The translations under genes were made by a program, and so were the position numbers. Positions 22,131 to 60,772 of a stretch of 64,000 bases of DNA are shown piece by piece (the first letter of the stretch is position 1; each line of letters begins with the position of its first letter). The stretch is from positions 1,984,001-2,048,000 of the forward strand of contig JAMWBK010000004.1 in the NCBI GenBank assembly GCA_029953675.1. Direction: 5' to 3'. The stretch is from Rhodosorus marinus CCMP1338. Its lineage: Eukaryota > Plantae > Rhodophyta. Under the pieces are notes generated by a model that searched no databases, was not told the origin of the DNA, and saw only the letters and a program-made list of their open reading frames with translations.

Positions 22131-22615
22131 GAATATTTATTTTATTTAAGTGAACGCATCGTATTCAATGAATATTATGTAATCTGCAAATAAGTATTTT
22201 TGTTTATGTACTAAGAATCTACGATCAAGCCCGTGGGAGTGGGACCATTGGGAGTCATCCATCTTTCCTTTACCCCGACGGGCGACAGTATGATGAATAT
22301 TTATTTTATTTCAGTAAACGCATCGTATTCAATGAATATAGTATAATCCAGAAATAACTATTTTTTGTTTATGTACTAAGAAGCTACGATCAAACACATC
22401 GGACCAGCGGCAGTCACCCACCTTTACTTTCCCTAACGGGCGACAGTAGTGTACAAGTTATACCCTCTATATATATTTTTATTTTTAAAATATTATGGTA
22501 TACCGTATATTTAATGTAATCTAGAAATAATTGGTCTGTTTACATACTAAAAAATGAAGGTAGAAAATTGGACGATTGGGAGTCACCCATCTTCACGGAG
22601 CGACGGGCAGAACAG
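22131..22615. repeat. Three diverged tandem units of about 164-175 bp
   Basis: GAATATTTATTTTATT...AACGCATCGTATTCAATGAATAT...TGTTTATGTACTAAGAA...GAGTCACCCA...ACGGGC at 22131 and 22295, with a more degenerate copy from about 22470. Confidence 0.85.
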
Positions 22616-33080: not shown

Positions 33081-34794
33081 GGTAGGTGTTTGATTTCGTA
33101 ATCAAACACCTAGCAATTTTCTCCAGTTAACGTGGCATCCTCCTTGATGGGTTGTTCCAGCTGATTCGTTGTGTATATCCCAGCTTGTTTCAGTAGTTTC
33201 ACTGGATATTGGTATAATTTCTTTTTATCTCCTGGGTCTGTGGCTTGGTGAAACTCCTTCCACTCCGGGTCTGTCCCTTGAATGGTAGATCCGCTGGTGC
33301 TCGCGCAGAAGTTGTGGGAGAAGTCTTGTGGTTCCCTGGCTGGCGGACACTCGCCAGATCTGCACTTTTTCAAGGCCAAAGCCTAAGCTCCCTCAGAGTC
33401 TTCGATCTCCAAGACAGGCATGACATATTCGGGTTATTCAATGAACTGTCATTGGAATATTAGACCAGATGAGGCGAACAAGACCATATCCTCGCTAGAA
33501 ACAGCCCTCCTTTTCCTCTCCTTCCGCGCTGTAGATGGAGATCTTGCATGATATTGTATCCCTGGTTCCCGTAGCTCTTCGCCTGGGTGTGCATCGTAAG
33601 TCAGGGGAAGAAATCCCCTGAATTACGATGCACATTTCTTCATCAGCAACTTCATGCGACATCAGTATCTGTTGAAGGAACAACCTCTCCCCGTTGAGCG
33701 TGATTGCGATTCCCGCCAGTGAGGATTGCACGGTGGGTGCCAGTAGAGTGGCGGATTTTGTGGTTGAGGAGGCGGGCTAAAGAATACGTATGTGGACTTG
33801 ACACTCCCTTGTCCCTTTGCGGCTCGGCCCCTGCCTGCAGCTTCCGATCGCACTGCTGCGAATACTATGCGTTGGCATAAGGAATAGTGTATACAGAGGC
33901 GCTTACCAACCCTGAGGCTTTACAGCTGCGTGGACAAACCGATGAGCAAGCACAGACGGCAGAAGACTTCGGATTCCTAGATAGCGCTGGGGATGCTTTC
34001 TTGCGGGAGTGTTGCCGCCTCCGATCAAACCGATCCACCCCGCGGTTGTGTGAACGCGTATATTGATTGCTACCAGTCAATAAATAAATCAAGAAGCCCA
34101 ATAATTGATTGATTTCAGTTATTGTGACATTCCTTTTTACAATAGAATATAGGTCCAGATTTTTTTGATTGAAAGTGACGTTTTTTTGGCCGATATGACT
34201 TTTGACTGTTTTCTCGTTTAATTTGTATGGTTTTGGGGGGGGCTGCTCTTGTTTTCTTCGATTTCGAACCGAATTTTGGGGGGCGAATTTCGATGCTTTT
34301 GCGGCTGAAAAAGTGGTTTCTTTATCGCTTTTTTGGGGGGGGGAACGGGATGGGCATTTTGGGCATTTTTAGGTATTTTGGAAGAGATGCGTTGTGTTGG
34401 GATTTATAGTATGGAATGGGAGCTGCGGAAGGCTTGATGTAGATGAAAAGTTTTGTGAGCGGGACAAGGTGGATGAGTAGGATCGCTAGATATAGCGATT
34501 AGGAAGTCTGTGAATAGTTAACAACGATTAGACGTTTTGTGGATGACAAAGTTTTTCGTTGTGTGCGTGTGTTTGGATTTTGATATATTTCTTTCTCTAT
34601 TGGGGCTCCGGAGCGAAGGGGCTGGTACAAAGTAGACTTATTGTTTTGGCGGTAAGTGGATAGCTACTCCCCATGGTTGGGAAACTGCTTGTAGAAGCAA
34701 TCTCTTTGCTCACGTCTTTGTCTCCGTTGTTTTTGTTTTTTGGGGGGCTGGGCTTGCAGGCTGATCGCAAGAACGATCGGGGTCGCTCGGAAGG

Positions 34795-42323: not shown

Positions 42324-42756
42324 GAGCAACGAACGTTGTCATCATGACGCAGCTGATTACGAAAGCGTTCCAGGTTAGATCCATCTGTCGTATCACTTTA
42401 GGATCAGGTACGGGAGTTTTCACCGGCAGCATGAATCGCGGGGTACCCACTTGAAGACCTAGCAAATACTCGAAGACACCGAGCTGTCAGAGCGATCCGC
42501 GAGTGGTACAACGACGATAACTGTACGGGGAAACCATCCCTTGGCAACGCTGATCCCTGCTATTTGGTTAAGCCACGACAAGTTAAAATCAAAGTAGACG
42601 CTTCAGGCCAGGTCATAGCAGGTCTGTAAATGAGTAACCCGCGATTCATACCGGCGGGGAAAACTCCTGTACCTGATCCTAAAGTGGTACGATAGAATGA
42701 TCTAACCTGGAACGCTTTCGTAATCAGCTGCGTCACGATGATGACGTGCATTGCTC
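42324..42756. repeat. Imperfect inverted repeat: arms about 42324-42461 and 42618-42756, spacer about 155 bp
   Basis: TGACGCAGCTGATTACGAAAGCGTTCCAGGTTAGATC...TTTAGGATCAGGTAC.GGAGTTTT occurs on both strands. The ORF track shows TQLITKAFQVRS...TLGSGTGVF on + (42257) and on - (42560). Confidence 0.9.
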
Positions 42757-50327: not shown

Positions 50328-51299
50328 GGAGCCCCTTGCTCAATATTTCCTCACTGTATTTGTGCTCTGTGTGTTTCAAGCACTGTATGAGGGTAGGAAG
50401 CAGTGTCCAAACCCCATCCGATCCCGAACTTTCAAACGTGCAACGAGACTGAACACGAAACTGCTAATCCTTCCGTACTCACTAAAAGCTCAATGAATTT
50501 TTACTCCAAAACCATCCCCAACCGAAAAGCCCTTCAGATTTCCCAGCGAATTGGGATTCAAAAATCAGTAACGACTGCTAGAAAAAAAATGAAAATCCAA
50601 TTTTGCTTCCCTGAGCCTGTCAACCGTGCAGCCATTCGCAATATATCCAAACCCTCCTGGAACGTTCATTCGCCTCGTAGAAATACCTTTTTCAATAACT
50701 CCATGCTCGTTCAATGCTCCTTCTGACATCCTTTTCCCCTAAAAAGACCAAAAAATAAAGATAATTTTGCCCAACCAACATGAAGAAAAATATAATTTAT
50801 TAATTAAAAACCCAAACCGACAGTCTGTCATTTAATGATTTTGTCTGCTGGAACAACCCTGATAGGGACCCGACAGTGTCCAAGTCCGCACCCCCGAAGC
50901 TACAGGAGTTAAAAGAGGAGCAGCAGTAGGAGACGCCAACACTGTTGCTGACAAAGGCGTTCGGATTCCCTTCAGTGGAAACCTTATGGTTACGGGATTC
51001 TTGAATGGGAAGAAGCAAGCCCTCCTGATCGATACCGGAAGTAGCCATTCCGTTCTGCGAGGCATACCAGACGCCACTCCAATAATCCCAACTCAACACG
51101 GGAGTTTGGACACCGCTTCCCCAGGCGCATCAATAGAGATTCTGGGGGAAGTGAACGTAATCTTACAGCTAGGTGATCACAACTTCAACTGGCAACCCTA
51201 TATTGTGGAAGAAGCCACTAGCCCGGGGTACTTAGGGAGAGATTTCAAAAATACAACGCGCAGCTGAATCTACAAAACCAGACCCTGACACTGAAACCT

Positions 51300-51423
51300 A
51301 AAGACCCTGAAGAACCTGAAGACCCTGAAAAACCTAAAAACCCTGAAAAACCTGAAAAACCTGAAAACCCTGAAAAACCTGAAAACCCTGAAGAACCTGA
51401 AAAAGAACCTGGAGAACCTGAAA
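51300..51423 (+). repeat. 9-bp minisatellite (CCTGAARAA-like) encoding PE(K/N/E) repeats in the hairpin loop
   Basis: KPKDPEEPEDPEKPKNPEKPEKPENPEKPENPEEPEKEPGEPE on the + strand. Confidence 0.9.
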
Positions 51424-51800
51424 TCTCTCCCTAAGTACCCCGGGCTAGTGGCTTCTTCCACAATATAGGGTTGCCAGTTGAAGTTGTGATCACCTAGCTG
51501 TAAGATTACGTTCACTTCCCCCAGAATCTCTATTGATGCGCCTGGGGAAGCGGTGTCCAAACTCCCGTGTTGAGTTGGGATTATTGGAGTGGCGTCTGGT
51601 ATGCCTCGCAGAACGGAATGGCTACTTCCGGTATCGATCAGGAGGGCTTGCTTCTTCCCATTCAAGAATCCCGTAACCATAAGGTTTCCACTGAAGGGAA
51701 TCCGAACGCCTTTGTCAGCAACAGTGTTGGCGTCTCCTACTGCTGCTCCTCTTTTAACTCCTGTAGCTTCGGGGGTGCGGACTTGGACACTGTCGGGTCC
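51420..51800 (-). pseudogene. Retrotransposon aspartic protease (pol 5' end), in the -1 frame relative to gag, cut at the fold-back junction
   Basis: Frame open from 51800 and overlapping the gag stop at 51737. LMVTGFLNGKKQALLIDTGSSHS...GEVNVILQLG...YLGRDF. Confidence 0.88.
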
Positions 51801-52514
51801 CTATCAGGGTTGTTCCAGCAGATCCTTTGTGTATGCCCCTTCTTCCCGCAGTAGTTGCAAACAATGTTGGTGTAGTTACGCTTCTGCAGCGCTTGCGTTC
51901 CGGGTTGGTAAATGCGTCCGGACCTGGTTCCCCTGCTTACAGTGGTCTGGGGCGTTGCCATTTTTTGGGGAAATTTCTCTTCCCATCTGGAAGGTTGGCT
52001 GGCTGCCTCAGCTCCCTCAATTTTTAGGGCAAGTGCCTGTGCCGCCTCAAAATCCTAGCACGTCCTGTATGTAGATGTATTTCTTGACCCCGGGTTTAAG
52101 GCCTTCGACGAAGCGGTCGAATTTCTCTGAATCCGAAATCTCTCCCACCTGGATCAGGCATGTGTTGAAGTATGCCGTATACGCTGCGACCGTCGTCTTC
52201 TGCTGCGCCTTTGCAAGTTGCTGTTTCGCGCGGATCTTGGCGTCTGCCGGGTAGAACTGGGCTTTGAGCGTATATTCGAAACCCTCGTAGGTCGTTGGTT
52301 TCCGGTCGTCCGGAATCAGTGACCACCAGTATGAGGCGTCGCCAGTCAAATAACCTTCTGCTAGGGTGATTCGGTATTCGTCGTCGTCGACGGGTAGCCG
52401 CGCCAGTTTGAAGTATGTTCTTAGTTGATTCAAGAACGTACTTATGACTAGGGCGTCACGTCGCCCGTCATAGGCTTTCGGCTGCGGAGCCTGCATCTTG
52501 ATGAGTGATGCCAT
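51737..52514 (-). pseudogene. Ty3/gypsy gag (capsid plus CCHC knuckle) with one frameshift near 52055
   Basis: PKAYDGRRD...FLNQL..YF...YLTGDASYWW...F...LKAQF...KFDRFVEGLKP. It continues in another frame as DFEAAQALALKIEG...CNYCGKKGHTQRICW. Confidence 0.88.
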
Positions 52515-52565
52515 CTGCGGGTTGTCAGGTTGTCAGGTTGTCAGGTTTTGGGCTCCCTTCTGCTG

Positions 52566-52583
52566 CTCCTTGCGATGAGACCA
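52566..52583 (-). promoter_or_regulatory. Primer-binding site TGGTCTCATCGCAAGGAG
   Basis: Begins with TGG 3 nt after a ...GTATCA LTR-like end. The complement reads like a tRNA 3' end: CT-CCTTG-CGATGAG-A-CCA. Confidence 0.65.
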
Positions 52584-52586
52584 AAT

Positions 52587-52926
52587 TGATACGTTCTTCG
52601 TTAGCGCGTGTCAATGATCCAAAATACTTTTAAATTCCCTTTTGTTTTTATCTTTTTTTTCTATCTTGGATACCTCCCTCTACTCTAATCTTAAGGAGGA
52701 AGGTCGTAACTTCCGTATTTATAGCCTTCGGGTTCATGACTTGGGTATGTTAGACTACTATTATTAGCCCTGTTCGTACAATATCTTGCCCACTGGGCGC
52801 ATCATAGACTTACTATATTTTGTACCCATGGTGGTTATTTTTAGCTCACCAATATGTTAGCCAGATGTCATGTCAGGACGTCACATCGGGTAGCACGTCC
52901 CAGGTGTCCCCCTGCGTACTGCGTCA
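52587..52926 (-). repeat. Putative 5' LTR (about 340 bp, TGA...TCA termini, TATAAATA box near 52716-52723)
   Basis: Minus strand TGACGCAG...GCTATAAATACGG...GAACGTATCA directly precedes the PBS. There is no second copy in the window to confirm the boundaries. Confidence 0.55.
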
Positions 52927-53561
52927 ATTATTCCAGAATTCAAGATCTACTTTCTCCTAATTACTCCCGAATTAGGTAGTTTATCCCAAAACTAACTTTC
53001 CTTTTCTAACTCTGGTTCTTCTTCCTTACTTTGCTTTCTTCTCTCTACCTTCAAGCAAGCTAACCTCGAAAGCATTCTGGATTCCATCGTATTTATGCGC
53101 TTACTTCATCGGGATTGTTGAAACGGTCAATCGTGACCATGCGGTTTCAACACGTAGCAGGGCTTTCACACATCGTAATATATACAGTAAAACCGATACG
53201 CACATGGCATACGATGGTTGGATGCTGAATCATAACGTTACTGTTTAAAATGGAGGAAACAGTTTGAACAGTACAAGATTTCGATCATCTTCACATTATA
53301 TTAGAGTATTTAAGTAGAAGATATCGGGACCATTAGTCAGTGGAACAATAAAGAAGGTACCGAAGTTTGGAGGATGAAACTGAGGTCAAGGTCAGGAATC
53401 CTTGAAAATTCCAACAGGGAGCAATACCGACGAGACTAAAATAAGTGGTGTACCTCCATAGATTCTGGCACAGATCGAGCATAATTTAGGTCAGCCGGAT
53501 ATGGCTAGAAGGTTGAACTTGCTTGGAAGGCAGACGCGTCACATTGGGGACCGTTTATGGA

Positions 53562-53623
53562 GACAGACTGTCCTCAATAGTATAAAGACAAACTGTCCTG
53601 AAAATACTAAAAGACAGACTGTC
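53562..53623. promoter_or_regulatory. Cluster of three GACA(G/A)ACTGTC palindromes upstream of delta-COP
   Basis: Copies at 53562, 53587 and 53613, plus a variant GACAAGCTGTC at 53676. Function is inferred only. Confidence 0.5.
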
Positions 53624-53853
53624 AGTTCGGTTTTTTTTATTAATGAATTATATTTAGTGGGCTCGTCTTCATATTGACAAGCTGTCTTTCGTTTTTTGTT
53701 TTTGGTTTTCTGTGTTTTGGATCGCTCTTCGGAAGGTTTGCCTAATAAGGCCTTTTTTTCTAGGGGGTGGGAGGGGGAGGAGGGATCCTAGACAGGTAAG
53801 GGATTTGGAGGATGAGAGAAGGAGGGAGGATGAGAGGGCATGCTGTTTTGGTT

Positions 53854-53884
<31 letters not shown>

Positions 53885-54048
53885 TGTGGGGGGGGAGGGG
53901 GTTGGTTGGGAGACTGTTTTTTTGATCGATTGTTTTGGGGGATCTTGGGTGTGGATCTGATATCTGTGGATCGTTTGGGGACGGGGGATTAAGGAGGTTG
54001 GCGTTGGGGGTGTTATTGTTTTGGTGTTTTTTTGTCATTGGAGGAAGG

Positions 54049-56509
54049 ATGGTTGTGTTGGCTGTAGCGATTACGACAAAGGGAGGCAAGCTCTTGCTGT
54101 CTCGTCAGTATATCGATATGAGTCGGATTCGAATTGAGGGGTTGTTGACGGCTTTTCCGAAGCTTGTTGGGACAGAAAAGGAGCATACGTATGTGGAGAC
54201 ATCGTCTGTGCGCTACGTGTATCAGCCTGTAGAGCAGCTTTACGTGATGCTGGTGACTACGAAAATGTCGAATATTGTTGAGGACCTTGAGACTCTTCGT
54301 CTCCTAGCGAAGATTGTTCAGGAGCATTCGCCTCAGTACGATTCTATTAGTGAAAAGGCTGTGAACGATACTGCGTTTGAGATTATCCAGGCTTTTGATG
54401 AAGTCATTGATTGGGGAGGCTACCGAGAAAACGTAAACCTCGACCAGGTAGCCCAGTTCACTACAATGTTCAGCAACGAGGAACTTCTCGCGAAGAGAAT
54501 GGAGGAAATGAAGATCAAGGAGGCTACAACTACTATGGAAAAGAAGGCTGCGGTCTTGAAGCAACAGAAAGGGGACGACAAAGTCTCCGCAATCGGAAAC
54601 GAACTCGGGCGGTTTATGGAAAAGACTGGGTTGGGCGGTCTTGCAAACGACCTTGGCTTTGCTCACCAGAGAGGAGCCGGAGGAGCTACTCAAGGATTCG
54701 GTGACGGAATTTCAAGTGAAAGCTACCAACGGTACGTACCATCTGAGAGATGCACTCAAACGCAAATTCAAATGCTACCTTCGGCACCAGTTTCATGCAG
54801 CTCCAACCGGAGCAGATCAATTCATCAATTCCAAGCTATGTGCGTTTTCACATCTACGCAAAGCCACTTTGGACGGGTCTCGATCAGATCTCTTCGATTG
54901 TACAATTTCTCTCGTGTTGGAGTCCCTTGGACCGTAGTTAATCGACTACAGTCCACAGAAGGGATGTCCTATCAGACATCCCTTCTGCCACTGCCGTCAC
55001 CTCTTCTCGTCGAAAATGTGTAGCAGGGATACCGCGTGTAGGGTCTTACGCTTCGTATCGAGCATCCGTTATGCCTCATACGAGCGTGATCCATCCATGC
55101 CCTTGTTTGCTTTCGCTTCGATCTTCATTGCATTGATTTGTTGATCTCCTTCTCGAAAGCATGTATCCCTCAATGAGCGCCTTCCTGATACTGATCCCTT
55201 TTGTTCGATCTTCAATATACAGACAAATGGGTGTTGGCGAGATGGGTGGCATGGGAGGCGGGATGGGAGGAGGGATGGGAGGAGGGATGGGAGGCGGGAT
55301 GGGTGGTGGAATGGGTGGTGGAATGGGTGGTGGAATGGGAGGCGGTATGGGTGGTGGTATGGGTGGTGGAATGGGTGGTGGTATGGGTATGGGAGGTGGA
55401 ATAGGAAGTGCAGCAGCGCCAACACAGGCGAAACCCAGTGGAAGTGGTGGAAGGGGTATGACTTTGAGTAAAGGAAAGAAGCAAGATAGCTTCCTGGAGC
55501 AGATGCGGGCGGAGGGAGAGATGGTGGATGCGCTTCCTTCGATGATGAAGAAGCCAACGGTAGCTGCGGCGGCTGCGCCCTCGATGGGATACGCGCCGGT
55601 CTCTGAAGCAGTTCATCTGACTACGATCGAGAGGTTGACCCTGAAAATGTCCAAGGATGGCGGTCTTGAGAAGCTTGAGGTTAAGGGAGACCTTTCCATG
55701 GCAATTTCTGATCCGGAGAAGGCTTCGATTCGTGTTCATGTAAACTTAGGTATTTCACTCTCCAGAGAAACACCTCGTGGTAATTTGCGCTGAGACTGTT
55801 ATGATCAATGAGCTCATTGCCCCTGCTTTCTGTGTTGCAAACTGCAGGCGATAATACCAAGTTCCAGCTAAGACCGCATCCTAAGATTGACAAGACGCTG
55901 TTCTCTCAAAAGAAGGTTTTGGGCTTGAAAGGGGACCCCAGCCAGAAGTTCCCAATCGGCAACCCATTGGAAATACTGCGCTGGAGAATGGCTTCTACTG
56001 ATGAAGATGATATCCCTATCAACATCAGCTGTTGGCCGTCTGAAGGAGGGAGTGAGTGCCATGTGAATCTTGAATATGAGCTTGTTAAGGCCACAGAATT
56101 GAGAAATGTGATGATAACCATACCTGTGCCTTCCTCGGGTAAGTCTTCGGAACACACACGCTCACAAAGATCCGTCTTTGCTTAACCGCATCTTCGGTTT
56201 CAATGGAAATTTTCAGGAGGAAGCTCGCCGTCTATTGGGCAGGTTGATGGTGAATACGAATTCAACGCGAGAACGTCGTCATTGATATGGATGATCCCCG
56301 TTATTGATAGTTCGAACTCCAGCGGAAGTTTCGAGTTCACGACAGGGCCTGCTGACTCGAATTCTTTCTTCCCAGTAACAGTGTCGCTCACCTCTAAGGC
56401 AACCTATGCGCAGATTGCTGTCACGGGATGCGCCAATGCTATATCGGAAGAAAGCGTCAAGTTTTCTCAGGAAGTTTCGTTGAGTACGGATGAGTTCATA
56501 ATTGTCTAA
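54049..56509 (+). CDS. ARCN1: Coatomer subunit delta (delta-COP), multi-exon
   Basis: MVVLAVAITTKGGKLLLSRQYIDMSRIRIEGLLTAFPKLV...QHT-like YVETSSVRYVYQP, KSNI-like MSNIVEDLETLRLL, and a mu-homology domain (FQLRPHPKIDK, LRWRM, INISCWPS, SGSFEF). Confidence 0.96.
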
Positions 56510-60712: not shown

Positions 60713-60772
60713 GACAGACTGTCCGACGAAAAGACAGACTGTCCCTATCGAGAGATGATAAGACAGACTGTC
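60713..60772. promoter_or_regulatory. Second cluster of three GACAGACTGTC palindromes
   Basis: Exact copies at 60713, 60733 and 60762. Confidence 0.5.

Follow-up and report, generated by a model that had tools for sequence, protein, structure and literature searches.

How transposons are first recognized and silenced is an open question, and natural inverted duplications are among the few proven triggers of silencing, the example being Mu killer. How red algae control their transposons has hardly been studied. Within the 64-kb window (the whole stretch of DNA that was analyzed), a rearranged retrotransposon of a red alga carries an inverted duplication of its own coding sequence, and it was proposed in an earlier note on this DNA that the locus could act as a hairpin silencer of the Mu killer kind. 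Is it such a device, or a by-product of DNA repair or replication? It is a clean candidate for the former, with one perfect 404-bp hairpin, defined junctions, a likely promoter and a small host genome of about 31 Mb. If it is a silencer, LTR retrotransposons outside plants would gain their first natural "killer" locus, and siRNA-based transposon control in Rhodophyta its first functional support. The analysis takes as its default position that it is most likely a neutral by-product rather than a selected device. Whatever its function, the locus is a neat illustration from nature of a probable microhomology-primed fold-back duplication within a coding repeat of low complexity, and RAD52 is reported to be missing from its lineage.

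The Locus and Its Host

The element is flanked by two housekeeping genes, encoding an acyl-CoA synthetase and delta-COP. The delta-COP protein is 100% identical in amino acid sequence to a Rhodosorus marinus MMETSP protein, in agreement with the red-algal host suggested earlier. At the nucleotide level the gene is only 88.6% identical to the R. marinus MMETSP transcript; the window thus comes from a sister strain or species of that MMETSP R. marinus. The acyl-CoA synthetase gene, which is of an expressed type, lies upstream of the left arm of the inverted repeat on the same strand, with a mere 516 nt between its stop and the arm and an orientation fit for read-through. The remainder of the window is gene-dense housekeeping DNA without further retroelement genes. 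A decayed relic at 33142–33315 is the sole other trace of the element within the window.

For Rhodosorus, a single published nuclear assembly was found, that of CCMP1338 (PMC10250338). NextDenovo assembled it from ONT reads, and three rounds of Pilon polishing followed, for which 100-bp reads had been mapped with bowtie2. The fold-back structure at 50844–51822 is known from one assembly. In a protein index that also lacks the host aldolase ORF, and hence does not cover the host genome, no exact record was found for the gag ORF, for the 136-aa and 93-aa ORFs across the arm/loop boundaries or for the 74-aa ORF of the gag C-terminus. The features of the locus are listed below by position; L001 and, further on, L003 and L004 are related Rhodosorus marinus MMETSP transcripts.

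50775–50843, plus strand: flank block X′, matching 53601–53675 in reverse complement at about 84% identity
50844–51247, plus strand: left arm, in which the gag C-terminal end and the protease up to ...GYLGRDF are copied in sense
Gag part of the left arm, plus strand: starts at the last Cys of the CCHC knuckle, with the gag stop at 50927–50929
51031–51042, plus strand: protease DTGS motif of the left arm
51247–51251: A5 run with a 1-nt frame change, at the arm/loop boundary
51248–51293, plus strand: first part of the loop, continuing the left arm without a break into the native protease C-terminus (QKYNAQLNLQNQTLTL)
51294–51418, plus strand: remainder of the loop, about 12–14 units of a 9-nt tandem repeat (AAACCTGAA) encoding KPEKPENPE...
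51414–51423, no strand: fold-back junction 51418/51419, with 4–5 nt of microhomology, TGAA(A)
51419–51822, minus strand: right arm, comprising protease, gag stop and gag C-terminal end, contiguous with the upstream gag
51635–51624, minus strand: protease DTGS motif of the right arm
51739–51737, minus strand: gag stop, after which the protease follows in the next frame
About 51859–51818, minus strand: CCHC knuckle (zf-CCHC, E 0.009, below the Pfam cut-off)
51823–52514, minus strand: rest of gag, with its ATG at 52514–52512 and a Ty3-capsid domain
52049–52052: frame change in gag, at a homopolymer (plus-strand A4)
52514–52047, minus strand: gag capsid region (Pfam Retrotrans_gag, E 2.8e-12; Ty3_capsid, E 1.9e-11)
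52571–52583, minus strand: PBS-like 13-mer TGGTCTCATCGCA, exact in L001 (nt 100–112)
52587–52978, minus strand: part of the putative 5′ LTR (R/U5), of which the block 52978–52912 matches L001
52979–53600, minus strand: possible upstream LTR (U3), of putative extent
53601–53675, minus strand: flank block X, paired with X′ in inverted orientation

A Truncated Ty3/Gypsy Element

Both gag matches, Retrotrans_gag and Ty3_capsid, exceed the curated Pfam cut-offs and bear out the original assignment to the gypsy group; a PDB sequence search with gag gave no match. Pfam aspartyl-protease matches are weak and stay below the cut-off (E 5.5e-4). The protease is 64–65% identical to that of the Rhodosorus relatives L001 and L004, and in L004 it is fused to the reverse transcriptase (RT) within one ORF. 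Gag (258 codons) and protease run without stops; two 1-nt frame changes, each at a homopolymer, are their only disturbances.

This copy has no RT, RNase H or integrase, and the flanks leave no space for them. A sensitive self-BLAST of the window likewise revealed no direct-repeat LTR partner and no 3′ LTR. The truncation described in the earlier note is therefore real in all four parts. The order PR–RT–RNase H–integrase is not found in the window copy, which, without the last three, is a fragment of a Ty3/gypsy-type element and not a complete member.

The Inverted Repeat and Its Single Fold-Back Junction

The two arms reported before were recovered by the repeat search: each is 404 nt long, they are 100% complementary and 171 nt lie between them. 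They form by far the longest, and the sole perfect, inverted repeat in the window, and a perfect match of this length cannot have arisen by chance. The domain matches and the positions of the arms also confirm the overall arrangement that had been noticed, with minus-strand gag and protease running into an inverted copy of the gag end and protease. As a folding prediction, the proposed hairpin holds as well: RNA across the locus would form a perfect 404-bp stem, with an MFE of −909.5 kcal/mol.

The loop had been taken for a spacer, a view that has to be given up. It consists of the protease C-terminus and the PR–RT linker and, like the left arm before it, keeps the order of L001 and L004 as far as 51406. 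Nucleotides 944–1434 of L001 align to 50842–51322 in one HSP, straight over the arm/loop boundary, while L004 aligns with nt 753–1273 to 50846–51365 and with nt 1301–1341 to 51369–51406. At the protein level, the loop frame QKYNAQLNLQNQTLTLKPKDPEEPE... aligns to residues 136–204 of the L004 ORF (E 6e-15), which then continues through a Pro/Glu-rich linker of about 130 aa into RT. Judged by these alignments, the 9-nt repeat of the loop is the family's own Pro/Glu-rich PR–RT linker. The sense copy ends in this linker at 51418, about 90 codons short of the RT start in L004, and the homology of the minus-strand copy to L001 and L004 stops at 51421.

Since the loop is the native, sense continuation of the left arm, 51418/51419 is the only fold-back junction. 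Its microhomology keeps the register of the 9-nt repeat and equally matches the reverse complement of the protease end (GATTTCA). At the left junction, 50843/50844, there is no clear microhomology.

LTR, Primer-Binding Site and Flanking Blocks

The block 52978–52912 is 82% identical to nt 11–76 at the 5′ end of transcript L001 and is thus transcribed sequence. Position 52926, at which the LTR had been supposed to start, falls inside this block, so that the 5′ boundary of the LTR should lie further out. The following 320 nt or so (52911–52594) have no counterpart in L001 and contain the TATA (about 52707–52714) that had been read as the promoter; this reading is unlikely, the motif being downstream of the point where the L001 transcript already begins. 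Minus-strand TATA-like motifs that start at 53184 and 53097 are located upstream of the L001 5′-end equivalent. With 82% identity in the R-region block versus 68% overall, the LTR promoter may still work.

The PBS-like 13-mer follows 2–3 nt after ...TATCA, which precedes it in L001 too, and this ...TATCA (about 52587) is plausible as the putative 3′ end of the LTR. A tRNA scan detected no tRNA gene in the window, and no tRNA cognate to the 13-mer was found. An Rfam search gave no match.

Outside the arms, block X′ carries the palindromic motif GACAGTCTGTC as well as AATAAA/ATTAAA motifs. Its homology to X ends exactly at the outer edge of the left arm (50843/50844), and it may belong to the host and not to the element. 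Block X adjoins 25-nt tandem units at 53561–53623 and is situated about 150–200 nt upstream of the match to the delta-COP transcript 5′ UTR (about 53818). The two blocks were considered as LTRs and rejected, as they are inverted and not direct. For terminal inverted repeats of a DNA transposon or MITE, neither a target-site duplication nor further copies were seen.

Relatives of the Element

In an exhaustive HMMER search, the closest public relatives all came from R. marinus, at 64–80% amino acid and 66–76% nucleotide identity. Word-indexed protein searches returned P0001 only, the other Rhodosorus fragments being accessible solely to the exhaustive search. The first word-indexed search was probably swamped by the low-complexity Pro/Glu tail. 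No near-identical family member was present among the public relatives or within the window.

The Rhodosorus Ty3/gypsy (Metaviridae) transcripts L001, L003 and L004 have the same gag as the window copy, at 64–80% amino acid identity. Like it, they have pol in a shifted frame behind the gag stop, together with the protease motifs and the Pro/Glu-rich PR–RT linker, and L001 shares the PBS 13-mer. Unlike them, the window copy has nothing beyond the linker and carries the inverted duplication. It represents a different, anciently diverged sub-lineage, for which synonymous sites are saturated. Against L001, pN is 0.12–0.20 and pS is 0.76–0.94 (saturated), from which it follows that the copy descends from a lineage under selection. 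Exact runs in common with L001, the sole relative so checked, do not exceed 12 nt within the arms and loop or 17 nt elsewhere. L001 was also weighed as a silencing target and ruled out, with 68% nucleotide identity and saturated synonymous sites.

Overall, the family looks like many diverged, low-copy sub-lineages. Related copies, rearranged and degenerate ones included, are transcribed in sister strains. A 30-mer across the junction had 0 matches in metagenome_contigs, a collection without MMETSP data, from which the gag profile failed to recover L001; the negative result for the 30-mer is therefore uninformative. The viral_contigs search retrieved nothing.

Origin of the Fold-Back

The locus is probably a young, non-autonomous Ty3/gypsy remnant that was shaped by a microhomology-mediated fold-back duplication and persists as a neutral by-product of repair or replication. 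We infer the fold-back mechanism, its recent age and the order of events from the arrangement itself. On the minus strand, the 5′ LTR, PBS, gag and protease would extend down to 51419, where they abut the oppositely oriented plus-strand fragment 50844–51418 with the gag end, the protease, its C-terminus and part of the Pro/Glu-rich PR–RT linker. The event may have started from a DNA end or nascent strand that stopped within the 9-nt repeat of the linker (...CCTGAAA-3′). This end could have paired with TTTCA 171 nt upstream, in the GRDF codons of the protease, and backward extension from there would have duplicated protease and gag end over 404 nt. At 50843/50844, a further switch or join would then have linked the copy to flanking DNA again, with RT, RNase H, integrase and the 3′ LTR presumably deleted in the same event.

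Two hallmarks of fold-back are found at the locus, namely a spacer that is native and contiguous with one arm, and a microhomology of 4–5 nt at the turn-around. Yeast provides documented cases both of foldback inversions via single-stranded hairpins and of inverted duplications that microhomology primed at breaks (PMC7467729, PMC11724301). Foldback inversions in yeast, cancer genomes and human disease resemble the locus in their short native spacer and few-base microhomology, the spacer being whatever lies between the site of priming and the broken end (PMC7467729, PMC11724301). Such inversions usually give dicentric or terminal rearrangements or very short (5–34 bp) insertions, whereas here a small internal 404-bp duplication was rejoined to normal flank and about 3–4 kb of element sequence was lost. 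Stylonematophyceae are reported to be without RAD52 (PMC10250338). In our opinion, this absence might favor microhomology-mediated events.

The undiverged arms (100% identical) point to a recent event, as was proposed from the start. Together with the coding sequence that is free of stops and has only two homopolymer frame changes, they speak for the youth of the copy. They also bear on the idea that two independent, convergent insertions of the same active element into one intergenic region were followed by two trimming deletions. The tail-to-tail order of the two partial copies is formally compatible with this history, but it would need a rare family to insert twice within 3 kb, two deletions on top, and copies that are 100% identical over exactly the part they share, and a second LTR fragment is absent. 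Identical arms and a microhomology junction favor fold-back over this scenario, which we regard as extremely improbable.

What a simple fold-back in situ leaves unexplained is that X′ ends exactly at 50843/50844, and this counts against it. It would be accounted for if a double-strand break in the center of a putative pre-existing imperfect palindrome X′...X had captured a rearranged cDNA or element fragment: the blocks are inverted partners (84%), and the homology of X′ stops at the edge of the insert, as it should if the break had been there. Integrase, moreover, did not make the left end of the insert, as this is not an LTR end. The fold-back itself would in that case have been produced by template switching or self-priming of reverse transcriptase, and the product would be functionally just as inert. 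Nevertheless, the right-hand boundary of the insert cannot be placed on the sequence, and the right copy has U3-like sequence upstream of the transcript start, so that the source would have to be a full cDNA or an integrated copy. Such a capture appears unlikely. Less likely still is an artefact of assembly or polishing, in which long-read chimeras created the palindrome or short reads homogenized its arms. Reads of 100 bp such as Pilon used for CCMP1338 (PMC10250338) map equally to both arms and could erase small differences, and both frame changes sit in homopolymers, a typical leftover error of ONT assemblies. However, the structure is internal to the window and is flanked by unique genes, over about 50 kb on its left and 11 kb on its right. 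Beyond its 404 nt, the right arm runs into new, coherent element sequence (gag, PBS, LTR), whereas a fold-back chimera at the read level would mirror the left flank, and the microhomology at the junction makes biological sense.

Could the Locus Act as a Silencer?

A neutral fold-back duplication, our preferred reading of its origin, can still be asked whether it silences. In the proposal modeled on Mu killer, a transcript started in the LTR or reading through from the acyl-CoA synthetase gene would yield 404-bp dsRNA, from which a Dicer-like enzyme would cut siRNAs. The siRNAs would then act in trans on intact members of the same gypsy sub-lineage. To this model as a whole we give a low probability. 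The perfect 404-bp stem and its 171-nt loop provide the structural prerequisites. The counterpart of the L001 transcript's 5′ end exists here and is relatively well conserved, the gene upstream on the same strand is of an expressed type, and the family is transcribed in sister strains, rearranged copies included. Thus, with the conserved 5′ R block and transcribed related copies, a hairpin RNA may well be produced. Moreover, the youth of the copy suggests that close relatives are probably found elsewhere in the genome. The red algae Chondrus and Asparagopsis are reported to encode DCL and AGO (PMC12026948), which lends the proposal some plausibility; no literature linking Rhodosorus to Argonaute or Dicer was found.

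Against these points, no near-identical target was found among the public relatives: they reach 80% amino acid identity at most, and the runs shared with L001 in the arms and loop are those of up to 12 nt given above. The AATAAA/ATTAAA motifs just before the left arm may stop read-through, diverged low-copy sub-lineages would narrow the target range, and inverted TE fragments are common by-products, which sets a low prior for a selected function. A real silencing effect of this candidate locus is accordingly rated as improbable. Slightly more doubtful again would be the full claim, that this unicellular red alga has, at the locus, an active, self-generated source of hairpin RNA by which the element's own Ty3/gypsy sub-lineage is silenced in trans. 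If transcription and small RNAs are absent, the locus is an ordinary rearranged transposon remnant.

The natural precedent is Mu killer of maize, which is likewise a natural inverted duplication of a partial transposon that gives a hairpin RNA if transcribed (PMC3440606). The locus resembles it further in having a flanking gene upstream that is oriented for read-through. Mu killer, however, derives from a DNA transposon (MuDR TIR and mudrA) and forms a hairpin of about 4 kb, while the present source is an LTR retrotransposon and the 404-bp arms consist of gag end and protease, not of promoter or LTR. For Mu killer, trans-silencing and siRNAs were shown genetically; for the present locus they are putative.

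Antisense nested or tandem insertions of EVD in Arabidopsis are similar in combining sense and antisense copies, potential dsRNA and silencing of the family (PMC11624286). There, the inverted parts are the LTRs of two insertions about 2–2.5 kb apart, and the hairpin idea is an untried proposal (PMC11624286), whereas the locus is a single copy with an internal fold-back of coding sequence. In maize Ac/Ds, an inverted duplication that arose as a by-product of rearrangement triggers siRNA-mediated de novo silencing (bioRxiv 10.1101/2020.01.07.897926). That rearrangement was driven by transposase, through alternative transposition of a DNA element, and its silencing was observed; the fold-back described here would instead stem from template switching during repair or replication.

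Structure of the inverted duplication

Transposon-derived inverted duplications are a known kind of structure, and the locus adds another example. A repeat search of the 64-kb window returned a perfect inverted repeat (50844-51247 and 51419-51822; 404 nt per arm, 100% complementary, 171 nt between the arms), as the earlier note had described it, and chance cannot account for a perfect match of 404 nt. RNA folding of 50800-51870 predicts an unbroken 404-bp stem (MFE -909.5 kcal/mol). The original observation is confirmed, with changes to its anatomy: a native loop, a single microhomology junction and a shifted LTR boundary. The only other inverted repeat of at least 60 nt in the 64 kb is an older pair flanked by the Med6 and TPT genes (42324-42460 and 42620-42756; 137-nt arms at 86%, 159-nt spacer), which has no recognisable coding content or retroelement similarity.

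The 171 nt had been described as a loop; alignments to related retroelement transcripts cross the arm/loop boundary and show it to be native element sequence. On the plus strand, the left arm ends ...GYLGRDF and, past a frame change, reads on as QKYNAQLNLQNQTLTLKPKDPEEPEDPEKPKNPEKPE..., where the pol of the Rhodosorus marinus transcript contig L001 has ...GYLGRDFLNYYQAKLNLPNQMLLLKPEEQPEEQPEEQPEEKPE. The nucleotide alignment of L001 944-1434 with window 50842-51322 passes the boundary without a break. In L004, a contig from a different MMETSP sample, a 511-aa ORF comprises protease (...GRDFLQQYNAQLDLVKQALTL), then a Pro/Glu-rich linker of ~130 aa and then reverse transcriptase (RT). Its nucleotide alignment covers window 50846-51365 and 51369-51406, and the loop reading frame matches its residues 136-204 (E 6e-15). 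Both contigs are collinear with the left arm and the loop, up to 51406, while homology of the minus-strand copy to them ends at 51421, which points to a single turn-around junction, 51418|51419, between two segments.

50844-51418, plus strand: sense fragment (gag end, protease, protease C-terminus, ~40 linker codons)
51419 to at least 52978, minus strand: antisense copy abutting the sense fragment (protease, gag, PBS, LTR)

The sense fragment stops inside the linker, ~90 codons short of the RT start in L004. The linker consists of 9-nt units repeated in tandem (AAACCTGAA, 51294-51418), and the sequence across the junction reads ...GGAGAACC|TGAAATCTCTCCC. The junction TGAA(A) keeps the register of this repeat and equally matches the protease end (GATTTCA) in reverse complement, a microhomology of 4-5 nt. 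Fold-back priming or template switching leaves just this signature, microhomology plus a spacer of native sequence from priming site to end, and would have produced the inverted copy at 51418|51419. Foldback inversions and inverted templated insertions formed in this way are documented in yeast (PMC7467729, PMC11724301). RAD52 has been reported missing in Stylonematophyceae (PMC10250338), and a link between its loss and microhomology-driven events is speculation.

Coding content and relatives

The assignment of gag and protease to the minus strand of a gypsy-type element holds, as the following features attest.

From 52514, minus strand: gag, matching Pfam Retrotrans_gag and Ty3_capsid, both above cut-offs
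~51859-51818, minus strand: CCHC knuckle after the gag capsid region
51739-51737, minus strand: gag stop
Past the gag stop in another frame, minus strand: protease with DTGS
52049-52052, plus-strand A4 run: frame change
51247-51251, A5 run: frame change

Gag and protease contain zero stops, and the two 1-nt frame changes, each in a homopolymer run, may reflect either genuine mutation or indel errors left over from long reads; in the latter case both genes are fully open. The closest public relative, L001 (protein P0001), is a transcript with an intact 254-aa gag, 73% identical to the window copy in amino acids and 68% in nucleotides, and, like that copy, has pol in a shifted frame behind the gag stop. 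Between the two, synonymous sites are saturated (pS 0.76-0.94) and pN is 0.12-0.20, which argues for anciently separated lineages, both under selection. An exhaustive search yielded 3235 gag relatives, only five of them at E 1e-30 or better; these and a close sixth fragment (P0200) all come from R. marinus MMETSP transcriptomes, and several are degenerate. The decayed remains of a gag C-terminus and zinc knuckle from a related element at 33142-33315 (minus strand, upstream of Sec23; 45% amino acid identity to P0001 residues 176-234, 73% nucleotide identity to window 51807-51877) show older insertions of related elements in the genome.

The 5′ end of the element

L001 (nt 100-112) has the PBS-like 13-mer of the window copy (TGGTCTCATCGCA; 52583-52571, minus strand) without a change, and in both it lies 2-3 nt past ...TATCA, the position expected of an LTR end and PBS; a tRNA scan of the 64-kb window found no cognate tRNA. 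Window 52978-52912 (minus strand) and L001 nt 11-76 share 82% identity. The LTR start formerly placed at 52926 falls within this transcribed block, and therefore the element reaches further right. The TATA box proposed at ~52707-52714 is an unlikely promoter, as it sits in a ~320-nt segment without L001 counterpart, downstream of the point where that transcript already begins. TATA-like motifs starting at 53184 and 53097 on the minus strand appear better placed. A second LTR, which would fix the true LTR start, did not turn up in repeat and self-comparison searches of the window.

Host and genomic setting

The window is gene-dense housekeeping DNA (Sof1/WD40, GT61, class-I aldolase, ARID/SAP30, Sec23, Med6, TPT, acyl-CoA synthetase, delta-COP, Mak10/NAA35), with no further retroelement genes elsewhere in the 64 kb. 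The locus occupies the gap from the acyl-CoA synthetase stop (50327) to the delta-COP 5′ region (~53818), both genes being on the plus strand. The downstream ORF encodes the delta-COP N-terminus, and its protein is 100% identical to P0003 from JGI sample 3300017118, the source also of P0001 and named there Rhodosorus marinus (MMETSP), in agreement with the red-algal host suggested earlier. Compared with the counterpart transcript L002, window 53933-55254 is 100% identical over the N-terminal 203 aa but only 88.6% identical in nucleotides. From the latter value, the window belongs to a strain or species of Rhodosorus close to, but not the same as, that MMETSP strain; the two values together indicate strong purifying selection and substantial divergence between same-named R. 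marinus strains.

Several simple repeats were also recorded. The delta-COP 5′ region contains a (GT)16 microsatellite (53857-53888), and shortly after the delta-COP longin region a 12-nt tandem repeat (GGTGGAATGGGT, ~12 copies, 55221-55412) encodes a run of Gly-Gly-Met-Gly. Two copies of an AT-rich 71-nt direct repeat (22131-22201 and 22295-22365) match at 87% and lie 164 nt apart.

Origin and silencing potential

The R. marinus CCMP1338 assembly, from which the window may derive, is chromosome-level (31.2 Mb, 15% repeats) and was built from ONT reads with NextDenovo, followed by three rounds of Pilon polishing with 100-bp reads (PMC10250338). Although such polishing could have removed small arm-to-arm differences, an assembly or polishing artefact is highly improbable: a fold-back chimera within reads would give a mirror image of the entire left flank, whereas beyond the right arm come gag, PBS and LTR sequence that is new and coherent, and the locus has unique genes to either side. 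The 56-70 nt directly left of the left arm (X′, ~50775-50843) match the reverse complement of ~53601-53675 (X) at 84% identity. This pair brackets the entire retroelement-derived segment, and X′ loses its homology precisely at 50843|50844, the outer edge of the left arm. Since X′/X are 84% identical but the arms 100%, the two pairs do not stem from the same event; possibly, a pre-existing imperfect palindrome or MITE-like sequence was broken at its centre and retroelement DNA was captured or inserted there.

The transposon-derived duplication was originally read as a possible hairpin silencer comparable to Mu killer. Its geometry fits dsRNA formation, the 5′ regulatory region is plausibly intact, a co-oriented gene lies upstream, the copy looks young, and Rhodosorus transcripts show the gag family to be diverse and expressed. 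The duplication is a reasonable but unproven candidate source of hairpin RNA. However, no near-identical target was found, the public relatives being 64-80% identical in amino acids; exact matches to L001 run to no more than 12 nt in arms and loop and 17 nt elsewhere. A 30-mer across the fold-back junction had zero hits among metagenome contigs, a collection lacking the MMETSP transcriptomes. Moreover, plus-strand AATAAA and ATTAAA motifs close before the left arm may end the upstream gene's transcript. DCL and AGO have been reported in other red algae (PMC12026948), while the literature yielded no evidence of Argonaute or Dicer genes for Rhodosorus. A real silencing effect of the locus is unlikely. 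It lies in a lineage whose transposon silencing is unexplored.

The blocks X′ and X carry the palindromic motif GACAGWCTGTC. This 11-mer, GACAG(A/T)CTGTC, has its X′ copy at 50819-50829 and clusters in intergenic DNA, within 25-nt tandem units at 53561-53623 upstream of delta-COP and in three copies at 60713-60772; in this genome it might serve in regulation or protein binding. One of the close R. marinus MMETSP gag relatives, contig L003 (96-750, JGI 3300017118), is a mosaic of same-family gag pieces of opposite orientation (gag 1-80 in sense; gag 83-109 and a divergent gag 115-168 in antisense; zero-spacer palindrome 116-159), which may be a real transcribed rearranged TE locus or an assembler chimera.
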